Part shown: positions 111 to 30,524 of the stretch, one piece after another | Position numbering within the stretch: position 1 is the first letter of the stretch | How the letters are laid out: the number at the start of each line of letters is the position of its first letter | DNA from: Pelomyxa schiedti | Lineage: Eukaryota > Protista > Evosea | DNA: 53,864 nt | Assembly: GCA_020536535.1 (NCBI GenBank) | Contig: JAHLWZ010000899.1 | Span: forward strand, 1 to 53,864 | Reading direction: 5' to 3' | Notes under the pieces: generated by a model | Told to the model about the DNA's origin: nothing | Databases searched by the model: none | What the model saw: only the letters and a program-made list of their open reading frames with translations | Program-made: the position numbers and the translations under genes

Positions 111-1222
111 ATGACTGGCCCAGTTTCGGTGCTCAATCTCATTGTTACAGGCGACGATTTGGGGTAAACAACACCAAACACTTGCGCTCTTTTATCCTTT
201 TTTTTTCCGGGCCACACCAGCACCAAGAATACAGGTACTGCGAGGAGCGCACGCGAGGAATTCTGAGATGCTGGAAGGCAGGGAGGTTGTCTGGAGCGTC
301 GCTAATTGTGAACATGGAAAACTCTCAGCAGGCGGCGAGAGAAGCGAAGGAGGCCAACATGCCCCTGGGGCTGCACTTGAACATCACAGAAGGGTCGCCT
401 GTGTGCGTCGCCAGCGACGGCGACACGGCTACCTCGTCGATCACAAGGCGGGACTCGCGAGGAGGCCAGGCGCAGTTCCTGGGGAAGTTTGCGTTCGCGG
501 CCAAGGCAATGAGCGGTGGGGTCAGAGAGGACGACGTTGTGCGCGAGGTTGAGGCCCAGATTGCCAGATTCGAGGAGCTGGTGGGCACGTGTCCCACGCA
601 CGTGGACTCGCACCAGCACTCGCACGTCTTTGTGGCCGGGATTATGGGACCGCTCTTCCAGAGGCACGGCGTGACCAGCACGAGGATCCCGGGGGAGCGG
701 TACCGCGCCCTGATGGTCCCGCCGCCGGAAATCCCGGCGAGATTTCCGGACGCGGACGACAAGGCGGACGCTGGCACCAGGGCGTGGTTCTACGACTCGG
801 TCTCCCGGCTGGCCGAGAAGTCGCGCAAGATCTACGCGGCCGCTGGGCTGAAATCCACGACGTACTTCACCGGAGTATGGAGGGGAAACTCCGCTGATTC
901 CAGATCTACTGCGGCACTGTGTGAGGCCTTGGACGACGTTATGTCGGAGATTCTGGAACCACGGCAGGAACCACAGGCAGAAAGAAGGGAAACCGAAGGA
1001 GACCCTCGACCAAAGATCCCACTGGACCCCGAGATTGGACGCTTGGTTCCCAGCGTAGAATTCATGCTGCACCCCGGCTACGTCCAAGTCGGTGGCGGGG
1101 ACGATTTTTCCCGTAGCCAAGATCGAGTGCTGGAGATGGAGGCACTTTGTGCTCCAGATTTCGGACTGCATCTGGAGCTGAGACGCCCCTGCGTTGTCCT
1201 TGTTTCATGGGATCAATTGTAG
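111..1222 (+). CDS. ydjC: YdjC/ChbG/HpnK-family carbohydrate deacetylase
   Basis: ATG at 111 reads MTGPVSVLNLIVTGDDLG. A GT-AG intron at 164-234 joins it to YCEERTRGI. Family motifs are present: ASLIVN, GLHLNITEG, PTHVDSHQHSH, EFMLHPG. Confidence 0.9.
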
Positions 1223-1305
1223 GTCTCCCTGTCCTGTGCCAGTATCAAAAAAAAAAATCACGAATTCGTTACCTCGTCCTCCTTGTGATCAAAAAAAAAT
1301 AAACA

Positions 1306-4143
1306 ATGACAGACGGTGGGTCGTGCACGGTACCTTCGGCAAACAGTAACGAGGCAACATCAACCAATGCAGAGGATAAGAGAACGTGCGTGTGACGAAT
1401 TGACTGTTTCCATTCCCACGTGGCGTCGTTCTGTGTGGGGCTTAGGTTTTTTCGCAGACAATTTGAGCAAGGACTTACCAATTACACGGGCTCTGATCCT
1501 TTGGATTTGTGGTCATGTTTCATTACTTGGTCAAAGCAAAATTCACCACCTACTGTTTACAAGCAACTTGTGAAAAGATGCACAGGCACCCTCTCTTTGT
1601 TTTCCATTGTTCTCATATCGGCGAAGGCTTATTCATGAGTTCTACACAATACAAAAACGACCCAAGATACCTCAAGATTTGGATTGAATATGTTCGCCTT
1701 GCCACAATGACGAACATCCAAAATCTCTTTTTTTTTCCCTCTCTTCCTTTCCTTTAGGTTGGATGCAGCAAAAGTCCCTTAAAACATTTCCACACTATGA
1801 AAGCAAATGGGATCGGGTTGAGCCTTGCATTATTTTGGGATGCTTGGGCAGTCATGCTCGAAACAAATTTCAAGTACAGAGAAGCTTACCAAACATATAA
1901 AGATGGGATCGCATGGTTAGACTCCCTTCCTCCCCTGCTACAAAGTGTGATTCACTTCAGCAATGCTCGCCCAGTGGAGAGATTAAAGTCACATATGACC
2001 AAGTTTCTAACGAGAATGGCTAATAGGAAAAAGCCAGACACAACTTCCCCTGATTCCAAACAAGGTATTGTATTTCTAGTGGGGTTGGTGATTAATGTAA
2101 AATCAAGAGAAACCGCAACAAGTGCTAAAACCAACAGTGATTCCCCCGTCGATTCCAGTTATCCCTGTCGAAACACAAACAACCTTCCATTCACCTGAAA
2201 GACCCACTCAAGCCCTTCATACACCCATCCCTCAGACCCCAGAAAAACACTCTGTAGATTCACCTTCACAATTGAATCAAACACCTCACCCAAATGCATC
2301 TGCCTCCGTGCAGACCAGACCTACGGCCACGCCACCCCCAGTACAGGACATGCCGAAATCCATTACACCACCAAGTACACAGGAAGTGCAAAATGTTCAG
2401 ACAAGCCCCATGGTTGATCAAGAACAGTGCTCCCCACCCCCAAATAAAAAGATTTGTCTCACTGCAAGCCACTTGACCCCAAGTTTCCTTCCCTTTAAAT
2501 TAGTACAACTGAAGCTATCTAGGGCAAAATGACGATAACTCAGCTCCTAGTATTGATGCTTTATCTTACATACCTCTACAAGGCAAGCCAACTGAAGATG
2601 AAGCCTATATGCCACTTCACGTTAAATCGAGCCCGTCACGGCACACAGTTACTCCTGCAAAATCCCCTAAAACGGCTGCAGTAAAGCACACAACACCACT
2701 CATGCCACGGGAAGAAGAAGATAAAACACGACATATTTCTAAGCCAGTACTGCAGAGCATACAGAAACCACCCCCATTATCTCCGCCAAACACACCAATG
2801 CAGAGTCGTTCCTCCACTTCTCCCCTTATAGGCACCCACCCAACCAGTGTGCATCTTGTTCAACACAAGGCGCCATCATCTGCACTTGTGGACATGGACT
2901 TGTTTGACGAAAAACTTGTCATATTAGGTTTGGTACCCTTCTTCCAGAAGATCTTACAAACATTTAATGTTAGGTGACAAGCTTTTCTGGGCCAAACCCC
3001 ACGATAGGCCTCCAAGAGGAACAAACAGTGAAGAGTTTATTGTGTGGGAAGCTTCTGGATTAGGTGGGGAGGATCATGAATACCTTCTGAAGGTAGCTTC
3101 CTTGTGTGTGAGGCCTCTGATTCCCTATCAGATTTCCCCTGCTTTGCAGTCGATGTTATGTCACAGGGAAGAAGTTATTTTACATAATTTGTCTGAGAGA
3201 GCAAGCAAAGATGAGGTAACCAGCAAAAGTGAGGTTCCACAAAGTGATCCCGCTATTAGATGAAGCGAATATCCAATTTAGTTACAATGGTTCATCAGGA
3301 TGATGTTTGTTGCATGCTATTTGATTACTCATTAGTTTTGAAATTTTCTTTGGAGGTTCTTTCATTCTCTTCAAACTTATTTTCTTTACCATGGGTGACA
3401 ATAAAGGATGTAATAAAATGTTCAGTGCCTTCCTCAGCGGAAGTTTATATGTTCTTCCTAATTGATATCTTGCTCATCCTGAAAACTCTGACTACCAACA
3501 ACATCGCCCATTGTGCTTTATCTCCTGTGAACTTCATTTTAAGACTAGGATCACCGTTGCGTGTGCTTTGAAACCGCCCTTTTTCCCCCAGCATACTCAC
3601 CACTGTCTAGGTTACTTCCCGCTAAACCCTGGAATCCCACAGAGTGGCATGATAGGGTTAGTGCAATTACAAAAATACAACAAGTACTCATGTCTCTAGG
3701 GGTTGAGATTAATCAATTTTGAAAAGGCGGTAATTTTTGGTGATAATCCAAGTGGCCACACTAAACATTTGGTAACATTACCACCTACCTTTCATTCAGT
3801 ACTGACGTTTACATACCAGAACGATCTGACCGCATTTGCCACAATTTTGGATCTTTTCTCTGCGGCCTTGGACAAGGAAAATTCTGAACGGTATTGATTG
3901 TCACCCCCGAGCTTTTAGGCTCAACAATATTTTAGTCCTCAAAATGAACCTTTCAAGCAATTCCGCAACTCTCTGGAGACATTACTGGCAACCTCCGAGA
4001 AACCCAACTGGTTGGAGATAGTAACAGAATTTCTTGATAAGATGGCAGCACAAGCAACCAGCTGGTTACAGGACAAATCCAACAATGAGCCATTGAAATT
4101 ACAGGAGTCGATGAGCCTGCTTCTCATGGAATTGCTGAACTAA
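1306..4143 (+). CDS. Bub1/Mad3 (MadBub) family spindle-checkpoint protein: N-terminal TPR domain, Pro/Ser-rich linker, degenerate C-terminal kinase
   Basis: The Mad3/BUB1 homology region appears across exons: SDPLDLW, QYKNDPRYLKIWIEY, MKANGIGLSLALFWDAWA, NARPVERLK. C-terminal kinase-like motifs are NIAHCALSPVNFIL and GLRLINFEKA. Multi-exon; stop TAA at 4141-4143. Confidence 0.85.
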
Positions 4144-4266
4144 GTTTCTCTTCCGACTAAAGGCCTTGACCAAAGATAATCCAAAACAATCTTTCCAAAT
4201 ACTCCCCGGGTTTGGCTTCTTTTCCATTTTCAAATTAACTACGCCAAAACACCAACCAGCCATCAT

Positions 4267-4902
4267 CTAAACAGACAAGAATCGTTCCACTGCCTCATAC
4301 AGTGATGTGTAGTCTATGGCGTCATAGTCCGTAGTATCCACCAGCAAGGTTCCGCCCCCGCACCCCCCCTTCCCTCCCACGACATCAGCCGGGCCGTACA
4401 CCCCGTCCCGCAGCTTGGCCTCCAAGTCCCCCGAGGCCAGGCCCTCGGCGTCCCGGTGCCCCGGGTGCCTCTCCGAGGCCCTGAGGGCCACGCGGCGCAG
4501 CAGGGTGCCCACGTCTGCGGTGCAGTGGATCTGGAGGATCGGCTGGGCCGAGAAGCAGGGGTCGGGCAGCAGCACCGACTGCACGAACTCGCGCCGGAAG
4601 TTGGACTCCACGACAAAGGGCCGGCCAGAGGCCAGCTGGACCCTAGCTATCTGCAGAAGCAGGGCTATCGTGGCTTCATTATGGGTCTGCAACAACGCCG
4701 GCGTGGCCGTGCCGTAGTGCCCAAACAGCAACTCCTTGATGTCGTCCTACATTTGTTTATTTGTTTAATTGTTTGTTGGTGCCTGGGCACATGTGGAATG
4801 TACCTTGTTGAATACTGGGAGGGAGAACTTGGATCCCAGTTTGTGGCTGAGTGTTGTCTTGCCACTGCCAGAGGGTCCCGTGATGAGAATAAACAGCCCC
4901 AT
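4267..4902 (-). CDS. Small P-loop kinase, AAA_33/gluconokinase-like (bacterial-type predicted kinase)
   Basis: Exon 1 reads MGLFILITGPSGSGKTTLSHKLGSKFSLPVFNK (Walker A). After one intron comes DDIKELLF...FVVESNF...ILQIHCTAD...LLRRVALRA...RHPGHRD...LLVDTTD. Confidence 0.8.
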
Positions 4903-4942
4903 TTTCCGTTGATGGTTTAAAATGTTTTACGCAAAAAAACTT

Positions 4943-7525
4943 TTATGTTTTTTGTTGTTTGGTGTTGGGTGGAGGCCTGCCATGTGAAGTGGGAATAGTT
5001 TACAGACAGCGGGGAATGTTGTTGTTGGAGCGTTATGCTTTCTTTACCAGTTGGTGTACCGGGCCAGGCAGACAAGGAGCCCAGAGTCAATAAGGTCGAT
5101 GTTGAATACGTTCTTGAGTCCGTTGGTAACATAAAGCTCCCAGTTGTTCATGCCAGTTTCGGCACAGAATGTAGTCTCATAAGAAGAGATAGACACGCGG
5201 TAGCGTGGCTGTGTGAGGTCCAGGTTGGGTTGTTCCGGCTTTTGTGGAGTTTGCTGTTGGTGCTTTTGCTGGTGCTCTCTGCTGAGAGACTGTGAGTGAG
5301 CGTTGTCTCGATTTGGTGTTTGATTGGGAACACCCCCAGAATCTGACAGGGACTTCTTGGAATTATGTGTTTTGGCATCTTCTGCTTCCGGCGATGTTTT
5401 ACTTGGTTTTTCGGGGGTGACGGGTTTTGGGGCCGGTGTTGCGGACTGGGGCAGAGGCAATCTATCGAACTTCGCCAGCTTTGTGCCGATATATCCCGGC
5501 ACTCTGGGTACTGTCACGTAATAGTAGTGCGCACTGCAGACCGCCATGTAGCTGGTGAACTGGGGAGCAAGGAGCAGAATTCGTACAACCACTGCTGGAC
5601 CTGGTTTGGCATTAAGGATAGGACAGTAAGACTGAAGTGAATACCTCCAACGCGACAAAGGAAGGCTGCATCTAAAGGGTGCGCGGCGAAGGGCGGGGAT
5701 ACTCGGGGCTGTTGTGGTCGGACTTGCATATGACGGTGTGAGTGTCTGTGCCGATGGTGCCTGGGTTGATAGTGGTAGGGTACATATGGATTATACAGGA
5801 GCGGAGAGTAGGGGAGAAACTGTTGCTGTTGGCGATACAAGTTGTTTTCTTCATGCATGATGGCCTGTTGTGAAAGGACAGCTCTTTGAAGGTGTGGCGG
5901 AACTGGGTCGTGTCTGTGTCTTAGAGGAACCATGGGAACATATCTCGGCATATACTGTGGCTGCTGATTACTTACAAACTCTTCTTCGGTATCTCCATAA
6001 TCATCAGGCACGTCTTCCTGTAGCCGAGGACGATAGTGGGCTCTGGTGGGAAGTTGCACTTGCTGTGGAGCGTAGTTCTCATATTCTTCTTGGAGATACG
6101 AGTAATCTGCTGGCGGTGCATACCCTTGGATGCCAGCAGCATATGGATTGATTTCCTCGGTCTGATAATCTGGAGATGGATATTCTTCTGCCTGGTCATT
6201 GTCGGAGGGGAGGGTATCACCCAACACTTCAAAGGCTGGTTGCATGAAACGATTATATGCCGGAATTGTGGGTGCCATTGGAACTGGATACGGTGGTGTG
6301 GAATGAAAGGCTGGAAAACTGGCAGTATCTTCCAGCTCCTCTTCATACGTCACAGGTTGATTGTGGTGATCCTGTGGAGGAGGTATCATCATGCGAAGCC
6401 TTTCTTGTGGGACTCGGCATCTTGGTTGACTATTGTTTGGACGAACGGTTCCACGTGAAACTTTAGTTTGTGGGGGCCGTTTGCCAGTGGCTCGGACTGA
6501 AGGAAGGGAGCATGCTTCCTTCTGTGCAATGATGTGATGTTTGTTAGGAGACCTTTGAGATAGAGGAGGAAATGATTGCACTAAGGTTTCCTCAGTTACA
6601 GTGTGCTGAGGGCTTGAAGGAAGAGGAGGGGGTGAGGGCGGTGCTCTTGGAGCATCAGTCTGCGGTTGTAAAGGGTGAACGGGAAGGCCGGATTGAAACA
6701 ACTGCTGCTTTTGCTGCACAAGGTCGATTTCGTTACTATCACACACTGAGCGAACCACGTCAACTTCAAAAGAAGAAGTAAATCGGAGGGTAGCAAAGGA
6801 AATTACATAAAACGTAAATAGATTACTTACAGTTTTCCTGACAAGGCCTTGATTGAATTTGAAAGGGTGTACTTATGAGTACTTGAGATCTTAAGTTCAC
6901 CACCAGACAAAGAGACGAGACTTGCATATGTATTCTGAAAGGGGTAGATGAGACTTGTACGGATTTAGCTAAAACAAGACCTCGAAGAGGAACATATTCC
7001 CCTTGCCTCGAATTTGTACTCCTCAACATTCCCGTCACGAATTTTTGGAACCCGCTGAGTGGCAGTCACTCTCACTGGAGACTTACCATCACCACAACAA
7101 GTAGCACATGTTACGTCTGTGATTAACCGAATAGTTAACTTCGTCAGAATCTCAGTTGGGTAACACACTTTCTAATGTTTGCCACGCGCAGGTACTTGCA
7201 CGAACACATGAAGTACATATTTCTTCATTAGATATCCCCTCCTTATTGCGCCAATCCTGCTTCACCAGTAATAGCATCTTCGTAGCTAGTCAGTAAAAAC
7301 TAAAAAAAGGAAGCTGGGGTTCTTCAATCACCCATGACTCAAAAGGAAAAAGACCAAAAAAGGGGGGAGAGAAGACGAACACAATCACATTTTAGTGCAC
7401 ACCAGTGAAGTAGAACGAGAAGAAATCCTTGGAGGAAGAGCCAACACCGCCACTGTGTTTGGCCACATTACAACAGACACTCCCTTTTCACTCTTCTCAG
7501 CCTTCTCACCCTTCTCACTTGCCAT
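4943..7525 (-). CDS. Hypothetical multi-exon protein: DnaJ-CTD/zinc-knuckle-like N-terminal part (CATCCGDG) and a long Pro/Gln/Tyr-rich middle region
   Basis: Long ORFs 5514-6758 and 5044-5658, plus upstream short exons (SYEDAITG, CATCCGDG, VEEYKFEARG) bounded by GT/AG. The start is uncertain. Confidence 0.5.
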
Positions 7526-14600: not shown

Positions 14601-15346
14601 AGGTTATACTGTTAAATGACCTATTTAGCCGCTGGGACAGCTTGTGCCCAAAATATGGAATAGAGAAAAGTATGTTCCTCAAAGCAGAGTTTCAAACAAA
14701 CCTGGTTCTTTAGTTAAAACCATTGGTGATGCCTTCATGGCGGCAAGTGGTCTACCTCACCCTTGTGAAGACCACGCCTCCCGAATGGTATAATTATGTA
14801 AGATCAAAACGGGGACTCCTAACACCGAAATAGATAGAATTTGCAATGGCAATGCTTCGGTCGCTGGCAGCATTTAATAAAAAACATGCTTCCAATCCTC
14901 CTCTCTCTGTGCGAATTGGAGTGAATACCGGCAGCGTTGTAGCAGGCATCATAGGAACAAACAAGTTTCAGTATGACCTGTATGTACACATTCAGTTGAC
15001 AGAGTTCAGGAATTAATTGGTTTTTTAGGTGGGGTGACGCCGTGAATCTAGCAGCACGATTGGAAAGTGTGGGAGTTCCAAACAGGATTCAAGTTGGTCC
15101 AAGAACTTACGAAATTCTTGCTGATACCTTCACTGTATGCCTTTACCACCATTCTATTCAGTTTCTCACACATAACCCACCAAAACAAAAAAAAAGTGGG
15201 AAAGCCGTGGATTGATCAATATCAAGGGGAAGGGCGATGTGCCATGCTATTTACTTGAAGAGAGTGTTGGTGCTTCCACGACGGCCAGCACTGCCAGTAT
15301 CAAGTCACAAGATCTCACTAAAGCACGAGATCAAGTGTTGTTTTAA
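8602..15346 (+). CDS. Multi-pass membrane TmcB/TmcC-like protein with PAS domain and C-terminal class III adenylate cyclase
   Basis: Many hydrophobic exons. TPR-like helices YPNSAYLCLNFASFL and PEVLRYYALFLMDI. PAS exons FNPSAEQLFGYAADE|VLGKNIRMFL. Signalling helix RRADELLLNILPSAV. Cyclase motifs EVTILFA|DIQSFT, EK|VKTIGDAFMAASG, VRIGVNTGSVVAGIIG, KFQYDL|WGDAVNLAARLES, IKGKG. Confidence 0.9.
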
Positions 15347-15620
15347 CCTTGGGCTTATTGTGTAAATAACTTCGAATTCACTGTAAAAAGCCTATTTAAA
15401 AAAAAAGAAAACTCAGTCGGTTTTTTGTGGCAAAGTTTCTTTTAACCAAGGAAACAATTTACCAGTTGTTTTTATAGCTATTTAGTTAATTGGTAACAAT
15501 TTAACCTCGGTAGAGGTTTCCGAACTGTTGAATGAAGCCAGGGTGTTGCCTCCATTGGAATCCCATTGTGTGGTGTGGCTGGGTTGTGAAATTAGTTTAC
15601 TAGTTTGATTGGTCTCTAAT

Positions 15621-16683
15621 TCATACTTTGGGCATTTTGGAGGGGTGTCGTGTGCGTGGATAGGTACAACATAGCTGCTGCATGCTCATGCGGAACTCGT
15701 CATAAGAAACACGTCCATCGCGGTTTTTGTCCTGGAAAAGGTGAAAAAAAACAAAAGCGTGTTTATCTCTTACCAAGTGGTTCAAAAACATTTGGCACTC
15801 AGTTCTAATATAGCAAGGTATTAGAAGTGAACTATGTGATGAAAACCTACGGGTTGAGGTGGTATCCGAAGCTCTTGAGAGCTTTTTGCACCTCGGCAGC
15901 ATTCATTACTCCATCACGCATGATATCCATCTAATGCCACCAAAAAGGTCACAAAAGAAAATGAACAAAGGAAGTCACACATAGATTTTCTGCAACTTCA
16001 TATCTCTCTTTGGCGTCCACACAGGCTACGTTATTCATGCATTAATGCCAATACGAAAAATTACATCACTACCTTGTAGTACATTCCCTGCATAAGTTGA
16101 GACATATAAGTAGGGAAACCCATTGGGTTCATTCCCATGCCCATTCCAGGCTGCATCCCCATGCCCATCCCTGGTTGCATTCCCATTCCGGGCTGCATCC
16201 CCATTCCCGGCTGCATTCCCATTCCCATTCCCATGCCCGGTTGCATTCCCATTCCGGGCATTCCGCTCATTCCCATTGGGTTCATTCCCATTCCCATCCC
16301 GGGCTGCATTCCCATGCCCATTCCAGGTTGCATTCCCATTCCTGGCATTCCGCTCATTCCCATTGGTGGCATTCCCATCCCTGGCATTCCGCCCATTCCC
16401 ATTGGTGGCATACCCATTGGAGGAGGCATTCCCATTGGTGGCATCCCTAATATACAAAAGCATGGTATTAACACCAAACAAAAACAAAGTGGGGAAAAAA
16501 ACGGCTTCAACAAGTTCTTGCACTCACACAACAACATGAAGTAATTTCGAGCCCATAATATTCGGTTTAAAATAATAGCGCAATAACACAAAACAACGAG
16601 TCACCGGGCATTGCTGACATTCCCATTGGAGGCATTCCAGGCATGCCCATTCCAGGCATCCCCATTGGTGGATAGTAGGCCAT
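15621..16683 (-). CDS. EF-hand calcium-binding protein with Gly/Met/Pro/Gln-rich repetitive N-terminus
   Basis: Starts MAYYPPMGMPGMG and continues in (GMGMQP)n repeats. EF-hand-like loops MDIMRDGVMNAAEV and DKNRDGRVSYDEF. Confidence 0.8.
16120..16447 (-). repeat. Coding tandem repeats (GMGMQP / GMNPMGMSGMP units)
   Basis: Reiterated cccatt/cccatg/ggctgcat units on the + strand keep several reading frames open on both strands. Confidence 0.9.
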
Positions 16684-16885
16684 TTTCTTTATGTGTTCGT
16701 TGTGCTGTTGGCTATGAGTATGGTTTATTTTGTTGTTTTTCCTTCTTCGTATGAAATTTTTTAGGCGTTGTGGCTATTGATGTTTCCAACTCCAGTAACT
16801 TCAGTTGCAAGCAATAGATACTAGATCCTGTAGGGGCTTCTCTCTTTCTTGGTTCTCACATCAAAAAAATAATCAACAGACCGTA

Positions 16886-18097
16886 ATGGCCCAAGATCGG
16901 CCTTCTGGTGTTTATTATCCCATGAGTGACGTCTGTTGCCTGCTGCTTTGTGGCACAAACAAAAAGAAACACAACGCACGGAAAATATGGATACAACGTT
17001 AGCGTGGTCAACTGTACGAGCTGTAATATTCGTATCTGTGTTTATGCAGCACGCACTGAGATCTGACTACCCTTGTACCCACAACATGCGGTCCTACTTA
17101 TTTTATCCTTACGAACTCCGTAATAGATGCGATGGAGAGTGTCTGTTGTATGAATGGCGTTGGATTGACTAACTACACCCCGATTTTGAACTTGCCCGAA
17201 GAACGCCGTCCGGCGACCTCTGATGGCAGATATGTGTTGGAGCATCCCAATACAGGTCAATCTGAACCGACTGTAATTGAGTCACGATCGACCGCCGGTC
17301 CCGCTTACAAAACAATGTGGCATTTGGCAGTTAGACTTGAGGATCTCTCGCAGAGAGATACTACAGATGTGGTTACAATGGGTGCTGCTAAGGAAACAAA
17401 GCAGTCTGCCTTGGCGTATTGGATCCCATTTCGGCCCGCTCTGTGGAGTTCTGTTCCATCTTACGTGGAAGATACCAGCCAAGAGGCAGAACCAGATTTC
17501 GCGCTCTGTGAAGGCTCTAAGAGAAATTCTATCCGACCCAGTCTCAGTATTACGCCCAAGGCTGTAGTATCTCCCTCAGATCCATCCATCCTCTTGTTAC
17601 AGAGTCTTCCAGGTTTGGCGCTCGCAAAAGTTGAATTTCCAACACTAGACTCTACTTATGTATATTCTAGTGACATTTCACCTCCTATTCCTTCCAAACA
17701 GTTTGAAAGCGATGTAGAAGAGGAAGGTGCCACTGTACCTAGAACTGGCACAGAAGGGTCCACGTTTTTTCCTCCTCAGAAGAACCCGATCTCAACAAAC
17801 CACATCATGCAGAGAAGTCAATGCGAATCGACGCCGCCCCGTAACATTTCCCCATTGGAAGGCATAGAAGTACCGCTCGTTCCTTACGAGACTGCATTAC
17901 CCAGTTACACAGACACAAAGCACCCAAAGAAATCTGGAACACCAAACGCAGACGCAACCAGCAGTGAGTTGGCCACACTCATGAGAAAGTACCTCCGAAG
18001 CCCGTTCCTTGGGATTTTCTGGCTACTGTCTGTTACAATTGCTACCATCACTCTCACTCTTTGGCACTGGAAATCCCCAACCACTCAACTCCCTTAA
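16886..18097 (+). CDS. Hypothetical protein with C-terminal transmembrane anchor
   Basis: 321-aa terminal ORF 17132-18097 ends in a hydrophobic helix (PFLGIFWLLSVTIATITLTLWHW). The 5' exons and start are uncertain. Confidence 0.55.
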
Positions 18098-18182
18098 TTG
18101 CTTCCAAATACAATAAATGGTGTTACTACTATGTTGGGTTCTTCCCTTTGTTGGGTTGTGAGTAAAAAAAAACCCACAACAC

Positions 18183-20153
18183 TCACCATATTGGCATACA
18201 GTACCACTCAGGAGTAACCACGTCCTCCAGTAGCTTATCAGGGTTTGTTGTTATGTGAGGCCTTGGTGAGTCCGGTACCAGCTTGATGTCCGTCACAACT
18301 GGGGGGTGTGTGGTGCTGTACTGCCACGGGTTCTCAGAGTAGGATTCTGAATCCAGCAGGTAAAAGGGGGTGGTAGGGTGAGCTGAAGGGGGGTTGCTGG
18401 CGCTTCTGGTGCTGTTGACTGGGGTGGGGGGAGGTACAGTCTTTCCTATTATGAGCTCAGCTGTGGTAGCGGGCTTGTTATAGCTCCGGTTGAACGTCAT
18501 GGAACCAAATTCGTGTAGTTCAAACATTCTGTACTTGGTGGTGGAGAGCGTCATTGATGTGGGGTCTTCTGATACAACGCGCCATGTGCCTTCCTCAGCC
18601 CAGATTGATATTCTCCTCTAATGAAAGGTAAGATGGTGAAACCAATAGAGATATTAGCAGTACCCCTTTGCTGTAGCCTTGAGAGTAGAAAACTCTTCTG
18701 CAAGTACCATTCTGCCGCAGTGTGAGGACTAGAGCGGAATTTGGTAAATCCAACCCAGGTTATATGGTGGATGCTCACCGTAGTTTTCTTTTGTTGTACG
18801 GCTGTCATGGAAAAAGACTTCACTGCGTGTATCAAAAAGTGTTTCCCAGTGTACTTTGGGTGAAAATGGGACTGCCTTGAGAAAAGCTTTCCCTTTTTCC
18901 TTGAGGTCAGGGATGGATGAAGAGCTATCATCAAGGTCGAAATTTCTTTCCATCCAACTTCCACATACTTTGTCGAAGATAGTTGAAGGAAGATCCAGCA
19001 ACGCACTCAAACCGGATTCGATTAGCTTGTTTCTCTTCCACACAAGTAAGGGAATTCTGACCTGTAGTACTAAGTCAAGTTTGGGGAAGAGCCAAAAGGG
19101 GAAATTACTCGCTTAAGCAATGTCTGTAGCCTCCTGCGCATCAAATTTTGCTTGAATAAGGCCACAGCCTCCAAGTCAACTACAATCACTAGACAGCACA
19201 TGATAAGTCATTAATCCAATTATCCCGAATTTCAGGCTGCAAACCGGAAATATGGTTCCAGATCCCATTATATTTAGGTTTCTTGAGTTCATTGAACCAA
19301 ATTTGGTAGATGGCAGGTTTGCCAACATGAACTTGAGGAGAAAAACTATAGACGTATTTCTCGTACGGGCTGTCATTTCTTGAGCTCTCAAGAGGGGTCT
19401 CTAGTGGAGTATCCTCTGTCACATTCGGTGACTGCAACAACGTGGGTGCATGATTTGGTTCCCACTCTCCTTGACTTGGCTGAAAATGGAGGATACCCTT
19501 GCAAGAAGTTAAGATGTGCAATGTGGTGTTGCAATTCAGGAGATGAGTTGGGAATTCGAACTGGTACATCTCTGTGGTGGTTTTTATTTTCTCCTGTTTG
19601 GTCTGTCAATAGGATAGTACGCAAGAGTTCCTGGCGAAAAACCTGCTTAAAAGAGAACTGCTTCACTGTGGTTACAGGCCGTCTTATTTTAGTATACAAG
19701 TCTTTTCTTCTTTGACTGGCGCCGGAGTCACAAGTCAATAGACTGAGAAGATCATTCTGTGCTTGGTGAAGGTTCTGCAATGCCTCGTCAATTCCATCCC
19801 TATGCCTGAATTTCGATCGATACAGCTCGATTCTGTTGTAAGTATCGTATATCTAACAAGCTTTGTTTAGCATTGGCCCCAATTAACAGCTCTTATTTTT
19901 TTTGTTTTGAGTTGCCTACGTCCTCCCAGTGCCCAACTCCAGCGAATTGCGCAATTGACTGCCTAACATGGTCAGGCAGCAAGTCCGGAAGGGCGTCCAC
20001 GATACCGGCCGAGAACTCGTCTCGAACGACATTATCCACATTAGACGCCGCCGTTTCCGCTGTCGCTTCTACTGCACAACTAGATGTCTCAGTTGTGCTC
20101 TCCTGTGGTCTTGCAGTGGCGCGAGACAAGAAACCTAGCCGATCTTGTAACAT
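18183..20153 (-). CDS. Hypothetical multi-exon protein
   Basis: A chain of same-strand ORFs (19893-20153, 19388-19780, 19189-19569, 18729-19043, 18183-18554) separated by plausible short introns. No domain recognised. Confidence 0.5.
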
Positions 20154-20255
20154 GTCCGTTGACAGGACAACCTGGTTTTTTTTTTCTTGGTTTTACGGTT
20201 TCTGATTGGCAGAAAATTCGTGTTATGTCTATCCGGGTTTGTAATTACACAGTGA

Positions 20256-23200
20256 TCAAGGGGTTTTGTTGGCGTTTGGTGGCGGCTTGCTTGCTGGTGT
20301 TGGGGGAAGTCCCACAATCGAGTGCGAGGCAGCCGGATTAGTGCGAGAACACACAGAAGTTGGTGAGGCAGCTGTGGTAGTGGAGCTTGGAGGTGGCGAG
20401 TGTGTCGCGGTTGTGTGTGGTTTGGGCGGTTTGGGCAGTGCCCGCGCCGGCACGCTTGCGCTGCATACGAGATTGTTGCGGTGAGCTTGCTGCTGTGATA
20501 GAGGTTGAGGTTGAGGTTGTTGTTGCTGCTGCTGGGCCGGTGTTGCAGGTGGTGGTTCTGTTGGTGACTGAGTGGCGGCAGGGTGCGGTGGTTTGGCTGC
20601 GGTCCCGCCGCCGGGTTTGGGTGTGGTCTGTGGGGACGGTGCAGCGGACGATGACGTGGATGGAGACTGCGATGATTGGGGGGAAGGGTTGGGTGTGGTG
20701 GGGTTGGATGACGACGATGACGACGATGACGATGTGGAACCCGGTGTTGTGGTGGTGGGATTGGCGGCGGCGGTGGTTGGTGAGGCTGTTGTGTTTGTGG
20801 GTGTGGCGCCTGAGGAGCTGGAGGACGTTGTTGTGTTGGATGATAGGATAGATGACTTTTCTATTCTGGCTGTTTTTGTTGGGGTTTTTGGGTCAGTTTT
20901 GGGGGTTCTTGTATTGGGAAGGAAGTTACCTAGTAAGTCACCAACAATATGGTTAGGGGACAACATCTCTTGCCAGTTCTCAATAGAGAGTGAACCAGAG
21001 GGTTTTGGGGGTGCAGGTGAAGGTGTTGCTGTGCTAGAGGAACTAGTGGATGTAGAATTTGAAGGAGTGCTTGACTCATTGCCGTGAATGAGGCAAGTCA
21101 TTGTTTTACCAAATTTCTTAAAACTTTGCATTGATAATGATGCTGAATCATACGGTAATATCTTAGCTTTTGTACGGCGTCTGTCTTTTGTCGGATCTGG
21201 GGGCTCAAGAAGATCTTTTTGGTCTTAAGGACGTTATTTCTGAGATTTGAAAGGTTACCTGGATCAGAGGCACAGGTCTCACACAGGAGAGAGCCAGTGG
21301 CGCTTCCCAACGCGAGATCTCCTTCCAGAAATATGTGGCAAGCTGAGCAAAAAAAGCACTGGAGGAATGAAGAATGAGTTGGAGAAGGAACGAGAGGAAA
21401 TCAAGTACCTTCGTATGGAAGAAATGTTCATGGAAAACAGAGCAAGGCTGTGATGCCTCCATCTGAACATTGCAATTGGGACAAATATCTCTAGAATCTC
21501 TAAGGGCGATAAGTTATGCAAAAAAAATGGGAACATGTGTGACCTTAGGAAGGCACTATATGGCCGGTATGGTGGTTCTTTATCTGGCTTTAGTAGAATG
21601 CATTGGGATTCCAGTGTCCCTCGAATTGCAAGGTCTTCTCGTTCGTTAATGAACATCCAAAAAATTTGAGAGGCTTCAAAGACTTCTAGAAACTGCAGGG
21701 CAAGGGATGTTAAAATAACAGATACAAACTGCATCAGCTACCTTTCTTGATGGCTCGTCGCGAGATGCGATAAAGGCTTCGGTATCAAAATTGACTTCCT
21801 TTGGTTTTCGCTTTAATTTGGCAATAGCTGGATCCCGAGAGAAAAATCTCTCATAACCCTTGAATATGGTACGAAAAAAGTGCAGGAAAGCTTTGGAAAT
21901 TGCGTGGTCAAGTTCTTTGTTTTCGGGGCTTACTATTTGGGCCGTTAAAACAAAAGAGAGTAGGACTTGGACAACAATTAAAGGAGCCAGTAATAGTGGA
22001 GAGGGAGTTCAGCAGCAAGCCTGTTGGCTCTTCTGGGAGTGATTTTGGAAAAGGAGGTTTTGCAATAAATAGACTTTTGTCAATATCTAGAATTACCACC
22101 TGTAAGTGAGGCAGGGACTTAAATCAGGAATAAGCGCGTGAGGTATACCTCTTCAATGGGAATGCCTGACCTCTTCATTTCTTCATAGGAATTTCTCAAG
22201 CACCCAATAAAAAACGGCATAGGTGCACTTATGTACCCAATAAGAGATTTGGGAAGTATTGGTATAAATACATGCTGTGTGGTGTAAGTGGCAGCACAAA
22301 GGAGGGGAAGGAATATTGCCTGCCATGTGAAAGGAAAAAGAATGGCACAAAGCGCATTTATAAATGAACTCAGAAGTTCCAACTTAGATGATACAATCAA
22401 AATCCTATTCTCACAGAGAAGAGAATGCCATAATTGCACAATTGCTGTGACGGAGAATTTTGAAAAAATTGGATATAATGAAACCTGGGCAGAAAGATTT
22501 TAACAATTAAAGGAGCTAACTTCGTCGATTACGATACATAGTCAAGCATGGTATCAGATGCTGGACGAGTTAGGGTGTATTCTGTCATTCCCTGCCCAGG
22601 GGTATTGGAGAATGTTTTTACAACAAAGCTCTCCCCCGCTTGTGGAAATGGGTGTGCTAAAACAGTCTGTGAATGTGGTGAGATTTGCTTGGCAGTTTCC
22701 AGTTAAACTGACCCGCAGGAACGCGAAGACTTGTGAGGAAGAGACTTTCCTCTTTTCCTCTACAATATCCAGAAGGGTACTGAATAGGGTCAACGAAGGT
22801 CTTGAGTGGGAAAAAAAAGAATCAGAGTCCAATGTGCCAATTTAAAGTAAGGAAAGACCTACACAAGGCTGATAATGCAAAAGCACTCTGCTGGTGTTAG
22901 TTGAACGAATCTTCGGCAGTATCCAAATCGTTTTGAGCCATCAGTGGCTGTTAGGACGAAGGAAAACGTTTCAGATGCCCTTTTTTTTGGTAAGTTGATA
23001 AATCAGAAAGGGTCAGCGTTAGAGTCACTTCTTAGGCGCCTTCGACGAGGCAACAGTTGGTGGCGCAGTGGACAAGAGAGAATCCTCTTCAGGAAAGCAA
23101 AATTGTGCTATTGTGGCAGACTCATCACCAACATTTGTTTCTCCAGGCTGTAAAGGAGGAAATCGGTAGTTCACAGTTGGAAATGGCTTTCCTCCTTTTT

Positions 23201-23352
23201 TTTTTTTAAATTTGTTAAATAGGGTGCCAGGCACTACAGCAAAGTGGAAATTGGAGGAAAAAACCCACAATACCCTTTGATTCCAGACGGATCACCAACA
23301 CATAGTCAAACAGCTCCTCAACTGTCTTTGTCGTCTTTTTGTGCTTCGACAT
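20256..23352 (-). CDS. DENN-domain protein (Rab GEF: uDENN-cDENN-dDENN) with Ser/Thr/Pro-rich tail
   Basis: Starts MSKHKKTTKTVEELFDYVLVI. Motifs: YRFPP, IAQFCFPE, FSFVLTATDGSKRFGYCRR, LLCENRILIVSSKLELLS...LFPFTWQ|HVFIPILP...APMPFFIG, FLEVFEASQIFWMFINER. Confidence 0.9.
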
Positions 23353-23603
23353 CCACCGCACGGATCTCTGAGGTTTGATGGTTTTTTTTCTTTCCGTTGA
23401 TCGAACAAAGCGAATTTCACTGCTGCGTGACAGCCCAGAAAAAGAATAAGACGATTTCTCATAGAGGAAGCAAAAAAAACTTTTGATTTTTTTTGTTCAT
23501 GATTGGTGGTGGGGAGAATCCTCCGCACGGCAGGGTATTCTATTTGATATTGGGGTGTGGTAGCTTACAGGTAGTGCAGAACCGGGATCCGGCAATTTAT
23601 TTA

Positions 23604-25555
23604 TTACTGGTTCTTGCACTCTTGCTGTTGAGCATTCGCGGCTCCTCCTGTGTTTCCTCCAGAACCGGAAGGTGAGAATGCGGGCGCAGCCTGAATTGGG
23701 AGTAAGTAAAATGATGGAACAGATAATGGGATAGCGTTGCTTTCGTGTATGGATTGCAAAAGCGAGTGGTGTTGAGACCAGAAAAGAAAAGAAAAGAAAA
23801 ACAAGAAGAGAGAATTGAATGAATTATATTTTGGAGTATATGTGGCTTTATTTTGTGTTTATTTGTATTTGTGTTTAGGGTGTCAAAATACTGTTGGCAG
23901 GCTGCCCTTTCCTCTGCCTTCACCTCTTCCGCCACGGCTTCCCCTTCCGCCCCTGCCTCTTGGTGCGGGCTTCTCCTCTTCCTCCTCCTCGTCATCATCG
24001 TCATCGTCGTCATCATCATCGTCATCATCGTCATCATCATCGTCTTCATCATCATCGTCATCGAAGTCCTGGTACGAAGTCATTTAGATAAAACCGCACG
24101 GTGATGGAGGTATGTTAGGATACATACAAAGTCATCCTCTTCATCCTCAAGTGCCTCGCCCGTGTACCACTTGATGGCGTCAGCACACAGTTTCTGCTTG
24201 AATTCCATGCCAACTTCGAAGTCAGTTTCGAATTCGGTTCTCAGTTCCTCTTCCTGTAGGAGCATAAGGTGTGTCAACCGAATGAAGAGAGCTTGCCTCC
24301 TCTTCGTCCATATCCTCAAGATTCTCTGGAATGACTGGTGGGGTGAAGAATTTGAAGAATGAAGGGACTGGTTCCTCCACAACCTTGGTGGCAGCTGCCT
24401 TACCACCTCTGCCGCCTCTCTTTCTATTTTTAGATAAGTGTGGACTTAAAGGAGTTTAACTCCGCACCCTCCACGTTTTGGAGCTACTTGCTTGCGAACT
24501 TTGCGCACTGTGAGGTTCTGATCGGCCTTCCAATGAACAGTGCATCTAAGGAAGAGTCAGAATTCCATTGTATTCTAGTCTTGGGTAACTGACCCTTCGG
24601 CTTGATCGAAAGTGATGGAACCACTGTTATCTTCGAGCAAAAGATATGTCTTGGTGAGGACTGGGTCGCTGAAGAATGGGTTTTCGGCAAACTCGAAATG
24701 GAGCTTGAAACCAGTCTGGATGGCGGTGATTTTATTCTTGGTGACTGATGTTCGTGGAAGGAGCTCAATTCGGACGTTCATGAGGAAGGAAAGGGCCTCG
24801 TTGTCCTTCTCGCTAAGTTCGGTCAACTCGGTAACAGTCTTTGAGTTATTGATGACTTGCTTCCAGAACCCGGGAATGCCCTTGGCAGCTAGATGAAAAA
24901 GTCAATAAACAAAGGGGAAAAAAAGAGGGGAAATACGCTCAGCGGGTGTCTCCGCAGTAGTAGTAGAAGGGACGAAGCCCTCGCATTCCTCGGGAGCGGG
25001 TTCAGCAACACCAGTTACAATTGCGGTGCGCTAAAAGTATGGAGGTGATTCCACAAGCTTTCGTACAAAGAACAAAAATACCTTCTCGTAGAGTGGGGTG
25101 TGAAGAGCAAAGTACTTTCGCTCCAAAAGGTCAATTTCTTCCTGCATTCTGGCCTCGAGAATTGCGTGTTGTTTCTGCAGGTTTTGAAGGGCAAACACTC
25201 GGCGTTGCACTGGGGCAGCAAGTGACTGAACGAACATTTCTGCTGGCTAAAAGCAAGAAGAAAAGGAAAAAAAGGGAATTAAAAACCGAGAAAGTGACCA
25301 CACCAAAGAAAAAGAAAGAATGCACACTGTTGGTTCTGCAGATTCCTCGGCAGCTGTCTTAAGCGCCTCAGTTACGGCTGCAAGCTCGATCGTCTCTGCA
25401 TAACCACATTACCAACTAACTAGGAACACACAAAAAAAAGGAAAATAAAAACACTGCAACGTGCGTATCGGGAACAACGCCGTAAACCGTACGAACACAA
25501 CGTAAAAAATGCAACGCCGCGAAAATGCAATACCTTTTGGTGCTGTTCCGGACAT
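23604..25555 (-). CDS. NAP1: Nucleosome assembly protein 1 (NAP1/SET family histone chaperone)
   Basis: VQRRVFALQNLQ...LERKYFALHTPLYEK, GIPGFWKQ, FKLHFEFAENPFFSDPVLTKTY, SFFKFFTP, DFEVGMEFKQKLCADAIKWYTGEA. An acidic D/E tract and RGG stretch follow. The last exon ends QQQECKNQ* (CaaX-like). Confidence 0.93.
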
Positions 25556-25862: not shown

Positions 25863-27092
25863 TCATACATGGCGGTTGAGGTTGAGTGAGTGCACAATGG
25901 AGTCGTAGGGGTGAGGAGGGAGTGTGGTGTAGTCGTCTGTGTCTTCCCAGTTGCAGTTGGTACTGCAGGCACAGGCCTCTATTGAGGAAACAGATACGGG
26001 GGTGAGAGGCGATGTTACAGTTGTGGGGAACCAGTCCTCGAAGAATGGGGACATGGAATGCACAAGCAACTCGTCGTGGTTGGGATTTGCTGCTGCCGTA
26101 TTTGGAGATGTGGATGTTTCATGTGTCGGTGAGTGCGGTGTGTTAGTGTTGGTAGACGTTGTTTTGAGGGTAAAACGGGTAGATGTGGGCTCTTCATCAA
26201 AAATTGGGTCGTAAACCTCACACTCCAGGGGGTCGGTGATGTTGTCAGGGCTTGGTGACCTCTCTGTCGGTGTGGATGGAGACCGCGGGGAGTCCATTGG
26301 TGTGGTGGGTGAGGGTGTGCATGTAGATTCGCAAAACGGTGTCAAGTCGTAATCAATGTCATGCGGAGAGATTGCGGATTGTGATAGTTCACAATCTTCT
26401 TTGAATGGAGGGGATGGTGATTCAGAGCGCTTGCAATGTGATTTTCTTGGTGCTGGTGGTAGTGTTTTATTTTGTTCCTTTCTCCATCTCAGGCCACATG
26501 CATTGCATAAGCTAAACAATAATGTCAATACAATTACAGGACTTTTTAAAACTTACGTGCTGTAACCTGCAGGCCCAGACCTAATGCACCGGGAAGCGTA
26601 ATTGAGTGAAAGAAAAAAAAAGAAAATAAACATACCTCCATTCCGGAGTCTCCCTTGTGCCACAATTTACACATCTAAAAACCGAGTAAGTTAAAATACA
26701 AGTAGGTGCCGGGATGTTGAGGGGAAAAGCCACGCACGGTGGATGAGCCAATGGATCACCTCGATTAATATCCTCACTATGAATTACATTTTTGCGACCG
26801 ACAGAATGCTGATTTTGTTTGTGATTCTTGTGGCCACTTGTATGTCTTGTACTGTGTCCTGCAAAAACAATTAATTTCATACCATACAAGTGAAAGGCAA
26901 TGTGTGCTGTTTAAGAGTGGAATAGGAAAGAGGAAAAAAAAAAGAATAAAGGGGAGATTTGGGAGTACTTTTGCTCCTCATTTCTTTCAAAAAAAAATGA
27001 GAAGTAAGGAGCAAAGAAAATAAAGACAAGCACGGAGGGAAGTGACTGCTTTTTAAAATTGTCACAACAGGGCATTGCTGTCCACTTGTCAT
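25863..27092 (-). CDS. GATA-type zinc-finger transcription factor
   Basis: Spliced finger CVNCGTRETPEWR|SGPAGYST|LCNACGLRWRK, followed by a Ser/Pro/Thr-rich tail. The 5' end is uncertain (at least to ~26860). Confidence 0.88.
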
Positions 27093-27330: not shown

Positions 27331-30300
27331 TTAAGTCCTGAGGAGCGAAAAAACTGCTTTGGTAATTAACTCTGAGGCCTGTGGTGCCTCAATTCCTCCC
27401 TGTTGGGGTTGCATAAGTCCACAATTAACATTAAACATGTGGGACTTACATTTGGATAGATGTTGGCAATAACGATGTACTTGAACTTTCCATTGGGCAA
27501 GGCGAGAGCAAGGTCTTTGGCCGAGTAAGCCAAAAGTTGAGGAGGAAAATTATGGGAAGTGGGGTACATGCACTCATGCTCCTTGATGATTCTAATGATC
27601 CCCCAGGACGCTCTCCTATCAGTGAAATAGTCACTCTTGATTTCACAATAGAGGCCACATCTTCCACTAATTTCACTCTGCCATAACGGGAAACTATGTG
27701 AGTTCCAACACTACATTTCCTTGTGCAGAGAGGGTCGTCTGTAAGTGCCGAGTTTTTCAGAATTTTCTCCAGTAGTGGAAGCAAAACAGGAATGTTGTGA
27801 TGAATGGCTTCCGCACTAAGTCCATCTGATATCTGGGTTGTTTTTTTGAATGAATGTCACTAATTGAATGTGGTAGTATCGAATTACAATTATTTGAACA
27901 TCATTATTTTCAGCAGAAAGGGATGATCTGGACTCTGCAGACAATGTAGCACCAGAGGCTGGATCTGATAGATGTGCACTCTTATTTGGAGCTGTTGTGA
28001 AGAGGAGCCTGTACTTAATATCACGAAGTATGCCAAGGTCTAGCTCTGTATGCACAACAGACCGTGACCCTTTAAGGCACATTAAGTTTATTTTGTGAAA
28101 GTTTGGCACTCACAAGCTTCATTAGCTCTCACGGCTAACGCAATGTCGTTTGTCGGACGAGGTCCAGCATGCTGGATTTAATGAGAGAAAGTTAAAAGGG
28201 AAAGCTACCGTAAAGCCGTAGTTCCTACTCAAGTGGGTGAGAAGCTCAGTCAACTCGGCTTTGCTCTTACAAAACAGTTCTGGGTTTCCCCATGCATCAC
28301 CTCTTTCAAGTTCTCCGTTCTGAGCTTGTAAGAGCCAGATTGGGTGCGTGAGCCTACCTCATTTCTACGAAAGATTCCTCTCTTTTCCGCCCACAAACAG
28401 AATTCGGGAGCTGGGGAAAGGCCATGCACTTCCCTCATTGTCTGGTCATCATGTCCTGAAACATCAAAGTAAGCCAGCATGCGGTCACATCCTAAAAACT
28501 GGGCTATATTATTGTGGGCAGACATTGGCAGATACATACTACATCCATGTAGTAATTAGCCCCCGCAGAAGCAAGGAGTTGGGCAGCCATTTGTTGGCCT
28601 TCGCGCGTAATTCCAGCATGCATTGTGAAGCACGGGGCCATACCCATTGGTAATCCTATGACCTTTCCACAAAACAGGTCTTGCAGGCAAGACATCTGTA
28701 TGACGAGTTAAAATCCGGAGATCGCATGCCATGTACCGACACACTATAAGCTGATGATTATCTGCGTGCGTTTCTGGACCTATGAATCCTGTCACATTGT
28801 TTACCATGAATGGGTGGTATCTTCTTGCTAAGCCATAGGCCAGAGCCTCACATGTTGCCATATCAATACCGTTATGGGCACCATAGCTATAGGAATTATT
28901 AATTTTGACACTATCGTCACTTTTGTTATTAGATATACCTGACTGAGCTTCCTTGGCCCGTTTCGAAGTACATGAAATTCCTTGCTTCTTTTCGCAGGGG
29001 ACCCGTTTCTTTCATGGCATTGTATGCTTGATCTGATAAATGCAAGATTGGTTTAATCTTTCAAACAATACACCAACCTAACAAATCCACAGAGATATTG
29101 AACTCGTTGACATTGGTACGATCCGTTCCTGCGAGACTTTGAAACATTATTTCTACTGGGTATCCCTCTTGAAGGCACTGTAATTGTGTCCTTATGTGCC
29201 CCAGGACACATATCTGGAAGCAGAAAGCAAGTAAGGTAACAGAAACACTGTAAGGAATTTACTTGTGTTGGCACTTGGTGCTCCTTTCTAATAGAATCCA
29301 GTGTTCTAAGAATTTTTCCGATGTTGTCAACGGTATCTATAGAGGGATTCACACCCAGCATGCAATCTCCCATTCTTCTTAATGTAAGAATACATTACCA
29401 TTCATAAGCTGTAATGTACCCCATTGACAGCCCCATTAGAGTCAATAGCCTTCATGTTGCATTAGAGATTGCGTTGGGGTTCCTATTACCTTACTTTATT
29501 CCATCCAAGTCATCTGTTTGGTGATTCGGCTGAAGCCTGGAAGACAATGTTCCCCGGGTTCCAATGCATGTTCTGGCCTAGTATGTTTTTTCTTAAATTT
29601 TTTTTTTGTTGCGGAGGCATTTACTTTTGTTGGAAATTTTAACTTCTTGGAGATATAGATTAGTTCATGGACATCCATAAGTTTGGATAGTGCTGCAACA
29701 ATCACGCCTGTGCACCCTTTTCCGATCTCGAGGATCTGGAACTGCTTACATCACCGTTAAAAATCCTTAGAGATACCTCAGTTCCAGAACTCGATAGCAT
29801 CAGATCTTTCAACTGACCCATAGTGAGATGACGGAATTTATTGAAGGAGTCGATGTCGATGTCATAATTGACCCGCATCACTGTGTCTATTTGCCTGTAA
29901 TAAGGTAAGGCATTTTGTGCCATATTCCAAGTAGGTATATCTCGCAAACCCATTAATATCACGCAGAGGATGTGCCCAGAGATGTTCCACCTCCAGGCCA
30001 CTGAGTGCAGTGCGTGCGGCCTCTCGCAAAAGCTCGTCTCTCTGACAAATAGGCCCAGTGCTGCTCGTTGTGGTAGTCAGCTTATCTCCGCTCTTCGACA
30101 CATCAGCAGCTGTAAGAAGTTCCGTAAGCCCATTAAACGTGTAACTTCGATTCTAAACTGAGCCATTAGTTGCCGGGGATGACTCCTCGTTGATTACCAT
30201 TAATGACACCCTATAGGTAGTGCAAGGCGACGCGATCCCAGCCTCCTCCGCAATCCCACAAGCCTCACACCGCGGGGGCAAGCAAATCGAATCGAAGGGC

Positions 30301-30524
30301 CTGAGACTCTGGGAGGGAATGGAACTACAGCACGGCATGCACGAAACCACCCTGCGGCGTGCCTGTTGCTGCACTCGTGTTCCTGTCATGTGACTGAGCG
30401 AAGGAGTTCCCGTTCCCTTTTGGACACCAGACTCATTTCCCTCCAGCAATATCTCTTGCGAGGAGCAACTGTTGCGGAACTGGCTTTCAAGCTCAAAGGT
30501 TGTTCCCTGCGCCCTCCTCATCAT
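27331..30524 (-). CDS. eutBC: Ethanolamine ammonia-lyase-family protein, fused heavy (EutB) + light (EutC) chain, adenosylcobalamin-dependent
   Basis: Spliced EutB motifs: YTFNGLTELLTAADVSKSGD, SSRLQPNHQTDD, GDCMLGVNP, FQSLAGT, MYFETGQGS, VNNVTGFIGPE, DRMLAY, PAPEF. These run on without a stop into EutC motifs: HLSDPASGATLS, DVQIIV|ISDGLSAEAI, RYGRVKL, LIGERPG, SMSAY, IANIY. More than 10 short introns. The exact 3' end and start Met are uncertain. Confidence 0.92.

Follow-up and report, generated by a model that had tools for sequence, protein, structure and literature searches.

We analyzed a stretch of 53,864 nucleotides from the amoeba Pelomyxa schiedti (GenBank assembly GCA_020536535.1, contig JAHLWZ010000899.1, positions 1 to 53,864 of the forward strand), here called the window. 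On its minus strand, from 30524 to 27331, lies a gene for one protein chain that joins EutB and EutC, the two parts of ethanolamine ammonia-lyase. We found that this is a genuine nuclear gene of P. schiedti. Taken as a whole, the reading that we favor is that a nuclear gene, descended from a bacterial gene in which EutB and EutC were already fused, encodes a B12-dependent enzyme that splits ethanolamine; we put its probability at about 0.7.

In the coordinate model, the gene has 18 exons and 17 introns. It starts with an ATG at 30524 and ends with a TAA at 27333-27331, and its coding sequence of 2403 nt comprises 800 codons and the stop, with no internal stops, reading through EutB and a short linker into EutC. 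All 17 introns are of the GT...AG type, with lengths of 37-55 nt, and the G+C content is 47.1% in exons and 38.4% in introns. The features are as follows, all on the minus strand.

27331 to 30524, minus: whole coding region, 18 exons and 17 introns, 800 amino acids and stop (coordinate model; exons 2-16 also by guided alignment)
30198 to 30524, minus: exon 1, N-terminal extension of about 80 amino acids without a bacterial counterpart; EutB homology from about 30275
29950 to 30152, minus: exon 2, N-terminal region of EutB (both models; weak Pfam EutB match)
29777 to 29894, minus: exon 3, EutB (both models)
29625 to 29735, minus: exon 4, EutB (both models)
29495 to 29577, minus: exon 5, EutB, RLQPN with Arg267 and Gln269, equivalent to E. 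coli Arg160 and Gln162 (Pfam; alignment to 2QEZ and 3ABO)
29420 to 29449, minus: exon 6, mini-exon of 30 nt (both models)
29263 to 29374, minus: exon 7, EutB, GVNP with Asn300, equivalent to E. coli Asn193 (alignment to 3ABO chain A)
29078 to 29213, minus: exon 8, EutB (Pfam; both models)
28939 to 29032, minus: exon 9, EutB, FETGQGS with Glu397, equivalent to E. coli Glu287 (Pfam; manual model; homologue survey)
28745 to 28886, minus: exon 10, EutB, GFIGPE (Pfam, E=1e-16; NCBIfam)
28540 to 28695, minus: exon 11, EutB, PMGMAPCF, with Ala472 at the place of E. coli Asp362 (alignment to 3ABO chain A; survey of 182 homologues)
28358 to 28498, minus: exon 12, end of the EutB barrel (Pfam; both models)
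28209 to 28319, minus: exon 13, last EutB residues (GDAWGNPELF) and linker of about 20 amino acids, residues 558-588 (linker also in bacterial fused proteins)
28114 to 28171, minus: exon 14, first EutC-homologous residues (HAGPRPTN) (both models)
27888 to 28069, minus: exon 15, N-terminal part of EutC (both models)
27568 to 27832, minus: exon 16, EutC core (ISDGLS, RYGRV, GERPG, SMSA) with a loop insert of about 10 amino acids (Pfam EutC, E=3e-17; NCBIfam EutC)
27450 to 27514, minus: exon 17, EutC (manual model)
27331 to 27399, minus: exon 18 and TAA stop (manual model; border differs in guided alignment)

The exon borders were derived by hand from the sequence and then verified by coordinates alone. 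We obtained a second model with our own dynamic-programming, protein-guided spliced aligner, using the bacterial fused protein P0156 as guide. Exons 2-16 were identical base for base in the two models, and the disagreement was confined to the last exon border. The alternative last exon from the guided alignment (27378-27272) was dropped because it has no likeness to the conserved C-terminus and has a weak donor site. When the 17 introns were retained one by one, each caused a frameshift or a stop. Exons 13 and 14 (28319-28114) carry the reading frame unbroken across the junction between EutB and EutC, with no stop at this point of the spliced model. The motifs RLQPN, GVNP, YFETGQGS, GFIGPE, GDAWGNPELF, HAGPRPTN, ISDGLS, RYGRV, GERPG and SMSAY all lie in the single spliced frame. 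A sequence-only reading of the window had proposed a single-chain gene with many spliceosomal introns and had named its limits (27331-30524) and these motifs, and the open frame of 18 exons, the guided alignment and the intron-retention check bear it out on each count. In the published genome of P. schiedti, genes have 7.4 introns on average and 98% of the intron borders are GT-AG (PMC8887013), figures that fit the structure of the window gene.

Both enzyme parts were recognized exon by exon in the profile searches that the sequence-only reading had proposed. There were six exon matches to Pfam EutB (PF06751) from 29628 to 28361 on the minus strand, with single exons exceeding the gathering score of 25 bits, and Pfam EutC (PF05985) matched at 27838-27569, minus, where exon 16 scored 63 bits against a cut-off of 25.8. 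Single-exon Pfam E-values ran from 6e-15 to 5e-4, with 1e-16 for EutB in exon 10 and 3e-17 for EutC in exon 16. EutB and EutC were also the sole NCBIfam families matched by the window exons. The only relevant solved relatives were the EutB chains 3ABO and 2QEZ; exon 9 alone, too short a query, matched no solved chain.

We numbered residues from single-exon alignments to chain A of the E. coli enzyme structure 3ABO. The substrate-binding residues of the E. coli enzyme are reportedly Arg160, Gln162, Asn193, Glu287 and Asp362, an assignment said to go back to Shibata in 2010 and Mori in 2014. The role of Glu287 in that enzyme is stated in PMC8473560. Four of the five are kept in the window copy, and these four (all except Asp362) are kept in every Pelomyxa copy described below and in 182 of 182 bacterial fused homologues that we surveyed. 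In the alignment, 198 columns show conservation of 98% or more among these homologues, and the window copy keeps 176 of them (89%).

The nearest proteins, numbering in the thousands, are bacterial; they are about 730 amino acids long, carry both Pfam domains in one chain, and are 50-56% identical to the window protein over the full length. Examples are found in Sorangium (WP_438040763.1), Desulfobulbaceae, Desulfospira joergensenii, Hyphomicrobium, Methylocystis, Pseudomonas and Planctomycetota. The window protein has the same order of fused parts as this bacterial clade, a linker that can be aligned with the bacterial one, the same active-site motif (PMGM-A-P-C-[YF]-T-[LMI]-H; PMGMAPCFTMH in the window), and likewise no N-terminal EutC tail. 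It differs from the clade in its 17 introns, the N-terminal extension of about 80 amino acids, the 10-amino-acid loop insert, and the absence of the AAGNRL end. A scan of species genomes for the pattern PMGM[AD]P[CG][YF]T, with a hydrophobic residue at 367, found it in 506, and none of these had a protein more than 56% identical. Because the bacterial relatives are already fused, with the same linker and motif, the fusion predates the transfer and was not made in the amoeba.

There are further copies of the gene in P. schiedti, one on contig C1129 and two on contig C801. The two on C801 mirror each other: they are reverse complements with 100% identity and lie at equal distances from the middle of the contig, which is 139,094 bp long. 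We counted three distinct paralogs because the C801 pair looks like an artefact. The C801 copy equals a 795-amino-acid GenBank protein named ethanolamine ammonia-lyase, and the C1129 exon, compared with protein representatives, matched at 100% a protein of the same name (KAH3732714.1, "ethanolamine ammonia-lyase [Pelomyxa schiedti]"). Identity to the window copy is 62-65% for C1129 and about 50-52% for C801. Both paralogs have the same architecture as the window copy and are intron-rich like it, and they keep 182 (C1129) and 177 (C801) of the 198 conserved columns; unlike the window copy, they also keep Asp362 and the C-terminal end.

We built maximum-likelihood trees, one from 58 rows and a more careful one from 35 rows, rooted with five other fused proteins. 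A branch with support 100/100 parts the bacterial clade and the amoeba copies from these five. The window and C1129 copies are sisters (100/99), all three amoeba copies fall outside the sampled bacteria, and the latter make up a separate clade (99 with 58 rows, 81/74 with 35 rows). The window and C1129 genes have 13 intron positions in common, in the same phase, which indicates that the two were duplicated after intron gain in a eukaryote. Judged from alignments and trees together, the three paralogs most probably descend from a bacterial gene in which EutB and EutC were already fused. The sequence-only reading had supposed an old horizontal transfer and had called for a phylogeny against fused bacterial EutBC. 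The phylogeny placed the amoeba copies with the fused clade, the transfer is supported by the bacterial identity of the nearest relatives and the position of the amoeba copies outside them, and its age is supported by the 17 acquired introns, the three diverged paralogs and the lack of a close donor in the 506 bacterial species genomes. One further candidate for a close relative, locus L018, was rejected: a fragment of it is 68% identical to the C1129 query exon, but at full length it is 40% identical to the window model.

Whether one transfer accounts for all three copies depends on C801. Its gene has 16 introns, and none is at exactly the same position as an intron in the window or C1129 copy; it is equally far from the other two copies (50-52%) and from bacteria; and the branch that joins it to them is weak (69/27). 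These observations could mean that C801 and the ancestor of the window and C1129 copies were acquired in two separate transfers. We consider this possible but unlikely, as the best tree unites the three copies and sets the bacteria apart in a clade of their own, and as 5 of the 16 C801 introns lie only 2-3 codons from window or C1129 introns, in the same phase (P ~0.001 in a simple permutation). The near-coincidence of these introns could be due to sliding, shared insertion hot spots or chance.

The favored reading includes a proposal for history and function. After the transfer, the gene would have gained spliceosomal introns, 17 of them in the window copy, and duplicated. The 800-amino-acid chain would bind adenosylcobalamin between the EutB barrel and the EutC domain and, by radical chemistry, would convert ethanolamine to acetaldehyde and ammonia without a protein shell. 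The ethanolamine would probably come from phosphatidylethanolamine, either that of ingested prey or that of the amoeba's own membranes. Corrinoid could be supplied by cobalamin-making endosymbionts or by prey and be adenosylated by a host enzyme of the PduO/MMAB type, and the acetaldehyde could be removed by host aldehyde and alcohol dehydrogenases.

Compared with the EutB and EutC of E. coli and Listeria (3ABO, 2QEZ), the window protein has the same domains in the same order, has Arg160, Gln162, Asn193 and Glu287 in common with them, and presumably carries out the same adenosylcobalamin radical reaction. Those enzymes differ in consisting of two chains from two genes, in having an N-terminal EutC tail, and in being served by EutA, EutT and shell proteins; they have Asp362 and Asn367, where the window copy has Ala and Met, and the window exons are far from the NCBIfam full-length cut-offs of the canonical enzymes. 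The N-terminal EutC tail targets ethanolamine ammonia-lyase to the microcompartment. The proposal that the amoeba enzyme works without a microcompartment fits, in that the fused protein has no such tail and its bacterial relatives lie in loci free of shell genes (0 of 5 loci). In 4 of the 5, the gene immediately upstream of the fused one is EutA, and EutA and amino-acid-type permeases are its usual neighbors.

The genome of P. schiedti contains much of what the proposed route would need. An adenosyltransferase of the PduO/MMAB type (PF01923) is encoded by two exons on another contig, unlinked to the window locus (C850:45441-46024; E=4e-17 and 7e-16), and other contigs have matches to the MM_CoA_mutase and B12-binding domains. 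Published Pelomyxa tables list the B12-dependent methionine synthase MetH and isobutyryl-CoA mutase IcmF, and, for the host, aldehyde dehydrogenases, alcohol dehydrogenases and acetyl-CoA synthetases. For the endosymbionts Syntrophus and Methanoregula, supplementary tables show expression of genes for cobalamin synthesis, including CobD, CbiB and corrinoid adenosyltransferases (PMC10579272). Other B12 enzymes and aldehyde and alcohol dehydrogenases, for which the sequence-only reading had suggested a genome search, are on record for Pelomyxa. Its expectation about the cofactor fared less evenly: the adenosyltransferase and the cobalamin genes of the symbionts agree with a supply of adenosylcobalamin, and the reactivating factor EutA did not turn up in the draft genome. 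Pelobacter carbinolicus, a physiological example of the fused form to which the amoeba gene can be likened from the published description, has two fused genes (eutBC1 and eutBC2) and lacks eutA, and ethanolamine cleavage supports the growth of its strains (PMC3543383). By analogy, it offers a precedent for function without EutA or a shell.

Several observations weigh against an ethanolamine-splitting enzyme made from the window gene. Neither PF06277 nor Sorangium EutA, used as queries, brought up an EutA in the draft genome of 52 Mb. The residue at the place of E. coli Asp362 is Ala472 in the window copy. The window protein ends about 20 amino acids before its paralogs and the bacterial proteins, without the conserved AAGNRL, and the missing part includes 5 residues that are invariant in 182 relatives. 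Its own product was not among the matches listed in two protein searches, and in one RNA run from the genome study only 0.11 of the words sampled from the window gene were present. The curated NCBIfam cut-offs are 554 bits for EutB (NF011649) and 230 bits for EutC (NF003971); neither the full-length C801 paralog (P0160; 446 and 141 bits) nor the bacterial fused protein P0156 (444 and 141 bits) reached them. We found no biochemical study or measured activity of any member of the fused clade in the literature.

Some of these observations bear on the substrate. The enzyme could be active on a substrate other than ethanolamine, or beyond it: the fused clade, and perhaps every amoeba paralog for itself, would use another vicinal amino alcohol, with Asp or Ala at position 362 marking the specificity. 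The fused clade, as sampled by P0156 and P0160, scores below the curated cut-offs. Position 362 is Ala in 166 of the 182 bacterial fused proteins, as in the window copy; the canonical enzyme and both paralogs have Asp there. At position 367, the fused clade has Leu, Met or Ile (Met in the window copy) and E. coli has Asn. By the homologue survey, the change from Asp362 to Ala is thus a trait of the whole bacterial fused clade and not peculiar to the window gene. In a Desulfospira-like contig (327-8205), an ABC transporter with a binding protein of the OpuAC type (betaine/choline) precedes the fused gene and EutA, and the Pelobacter genome paper itself proposed different substrates for its two fused copies (PMC3543383). 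Against this, the other four substrate-binding residues are invariant across the fused clade, Pelobacter strains that have only fused copies grow on ethanolamine (PMC3543383), and the usual neighbors, EutA and amino-acid-type permeases, are those of short eut loci. A different substrate therefore seems rather improbable to us. As an observation on some bacteria, the OpuAC-type neighbor hints at uptake of a quaternary or other amino alcohol.

The remaining observations bear on the window copy itself. The truncated C-terminus, the few words in the RNA run and the lack of a database protein among the matches listed would fit a redundant paralog that is being lost, with little or no expression, leaving the reaction to the C1129 and C801 copies. 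It is quite improbable that the gene is decaying in this way, given its 800 open codons, the intact splice sites of all 17 introns, the intact catalytic residues, and a share of clade-conserved columns as high as that of C801.

One tentative interpretation, which we think has the odds against it, is that Pelomyxa expanded a B12 radical enzyme gained by lateral transfer into three paralogs, which, with Ala or Asp at 362, represent amino-alcohol lyase specificity diversifying within a eukaryote, on corrinoids from methanogen and syntroph endosymbionts, with at least 36 intron gains and two lineages colonized independently by introns that nearly coincide, in phase, at five positions. The number follows from the ancestor having been intron-free, so that at least 36 intron positions would have been gained since the transfer. 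If this is true, nature would have run, in this family, a dated experiment in which intron gain or sliding can be studied.

Real as the gene is, and rare among eukaryotes, it is less novel than the sequence-only reading had supposed: the fusion is bacterial in origin, the sister copies are named in GenBank, and a fused EutBC of another eukaryote, Anaeramoeba flamelloides, is published. That gene was reported as laterally acquired and B12-dependent (Nat Commun 2024, PMC11550330, Supplementary Note 3), in a paper that calls the enzyme undescribed in eukaryotes, proposes symbionts as the source of B12 and makes no mention of Pelomyxa. In a survey of 2009, the B12-dependent enzymes found in eukaryotes numbered only three: methionine synthase, methylmalonyl-CoA mutase and class II ribonucleotide reductase (PMC2667541). 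The Anaeramoeba supplement of 2024 is the first report of ethanolamine ammonia-lyase from a eukaryote. Anaeramoeba is, like Pelomyxa, an anaerobic, symbiont-bearing protist with its own cobalamin adenosyltransferase and B12-making symbionts; it belongs to Metamonada and Pelomyxa to Amoebozoa, and Pelomyxa has three paralogs. Ethanolamine ammonia-lyase is not mentioned in the searchable tables and texts of two Pelomyxa papers (PMC8887013, PMC10579272), and we found no literature on ethanolamine in Pelomyxa or Mastigamoeba. Pelomyxa is thus a second eukaryotic lineage with ethanolamine ammonia-lyase, named in GenBank and, as far as we found, not discussed in print.

The presence of three constrained copies in a second symbiont-bearing anaerobe, a member of another supergroup, hints at a recurring pattern in which B12-making symbionts let their hosts keep bacterial radical enzymes. 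The conversion of ethanolamine to acetaldehyde and ammonia would add a reaction that the metabolic map published for the Pelomyxa consortium lacks, and with this gene family intron gain after transfer can be studied in a clean case.

Another apparent eukaryotic case was rejected. The 6.4-kb contig JBEBWU010000113.1 (GCA_040391985.1) is intron-free, has 31% G+C, and its EutB groups with Entomomonas, so that we regard it as bacterial. Encoded from 207 to 6080 are a periplasmic binding protein, EutA with a frameshift, and an EutB that breaks off right after the YF of YFETGQGS, and the eut genes adjoin two genes whose ELMO_CED12 domain is typical of eukaryotes. This may be an eut locus in decay, in a host-associated bacterium.

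The genes on either side of the window gene are those of a eukaryote. The downstream neighbor encodes a GATA zinc finger (26356-26889, minus) with an intron between its two Cys pairs; the two halves, at 26.5-26.9 kb, both match Pfam GATA with scores that stay under the cut-off. On the plus strand, at 31.3-31.7 kb, there are parts of a PLAC8 gene. The contig had been taken as eukaryotic on the strength of these flanks, and both were found. Amplified single cells were the material for the assembly (PMC8887013). An origin of the gene from bacterial contamination or from a chimeric assembly, for which the three prokaryotic symbionts in the amplified cells and the artefact-like perfect palindrome of contig C801 could be cited, has next to no chance of being right, as contamination is already refuted by the 17 GT-AG introns that break up the gene, the gene is embedded in a contig of 53.9 kb with GATA and PLAC8 genes on its two sides that are themselves split by introns, and the closest bacterium is at most 56% identical.

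The palindrome itself extends well beyond the two gene copies. Positions 15085-24999 and 114000-123915 of C801 are identical over at least 9.9 kb around the gene, and the whole contig is palindrome-like, which is likely an artefact of single-cell amplification or assembly. The C1129 gene lies at about 2900-6300 on the minus strand. Its GenBank model (KAH3732714.1) has 1144 amino acids, of which the first ~480 are unrelated, and it skips about 25 codons, including FETGQGS with the catalytic Glu, that the genome encodes in frame; these oddities are probably a gene-model error.

Exon 1 of the window gene matched no Pfam family, and the C-termini of the three Pelomyxa copies are not SKL-like. The first 45 residues of the window model include 5 Glu. 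Residues 46-78 (30290-30389, minus), which follow an internal Met46, are rich in Arg and Ser, with 32 residues free of acidic ones, and resemble an organelle presequence.

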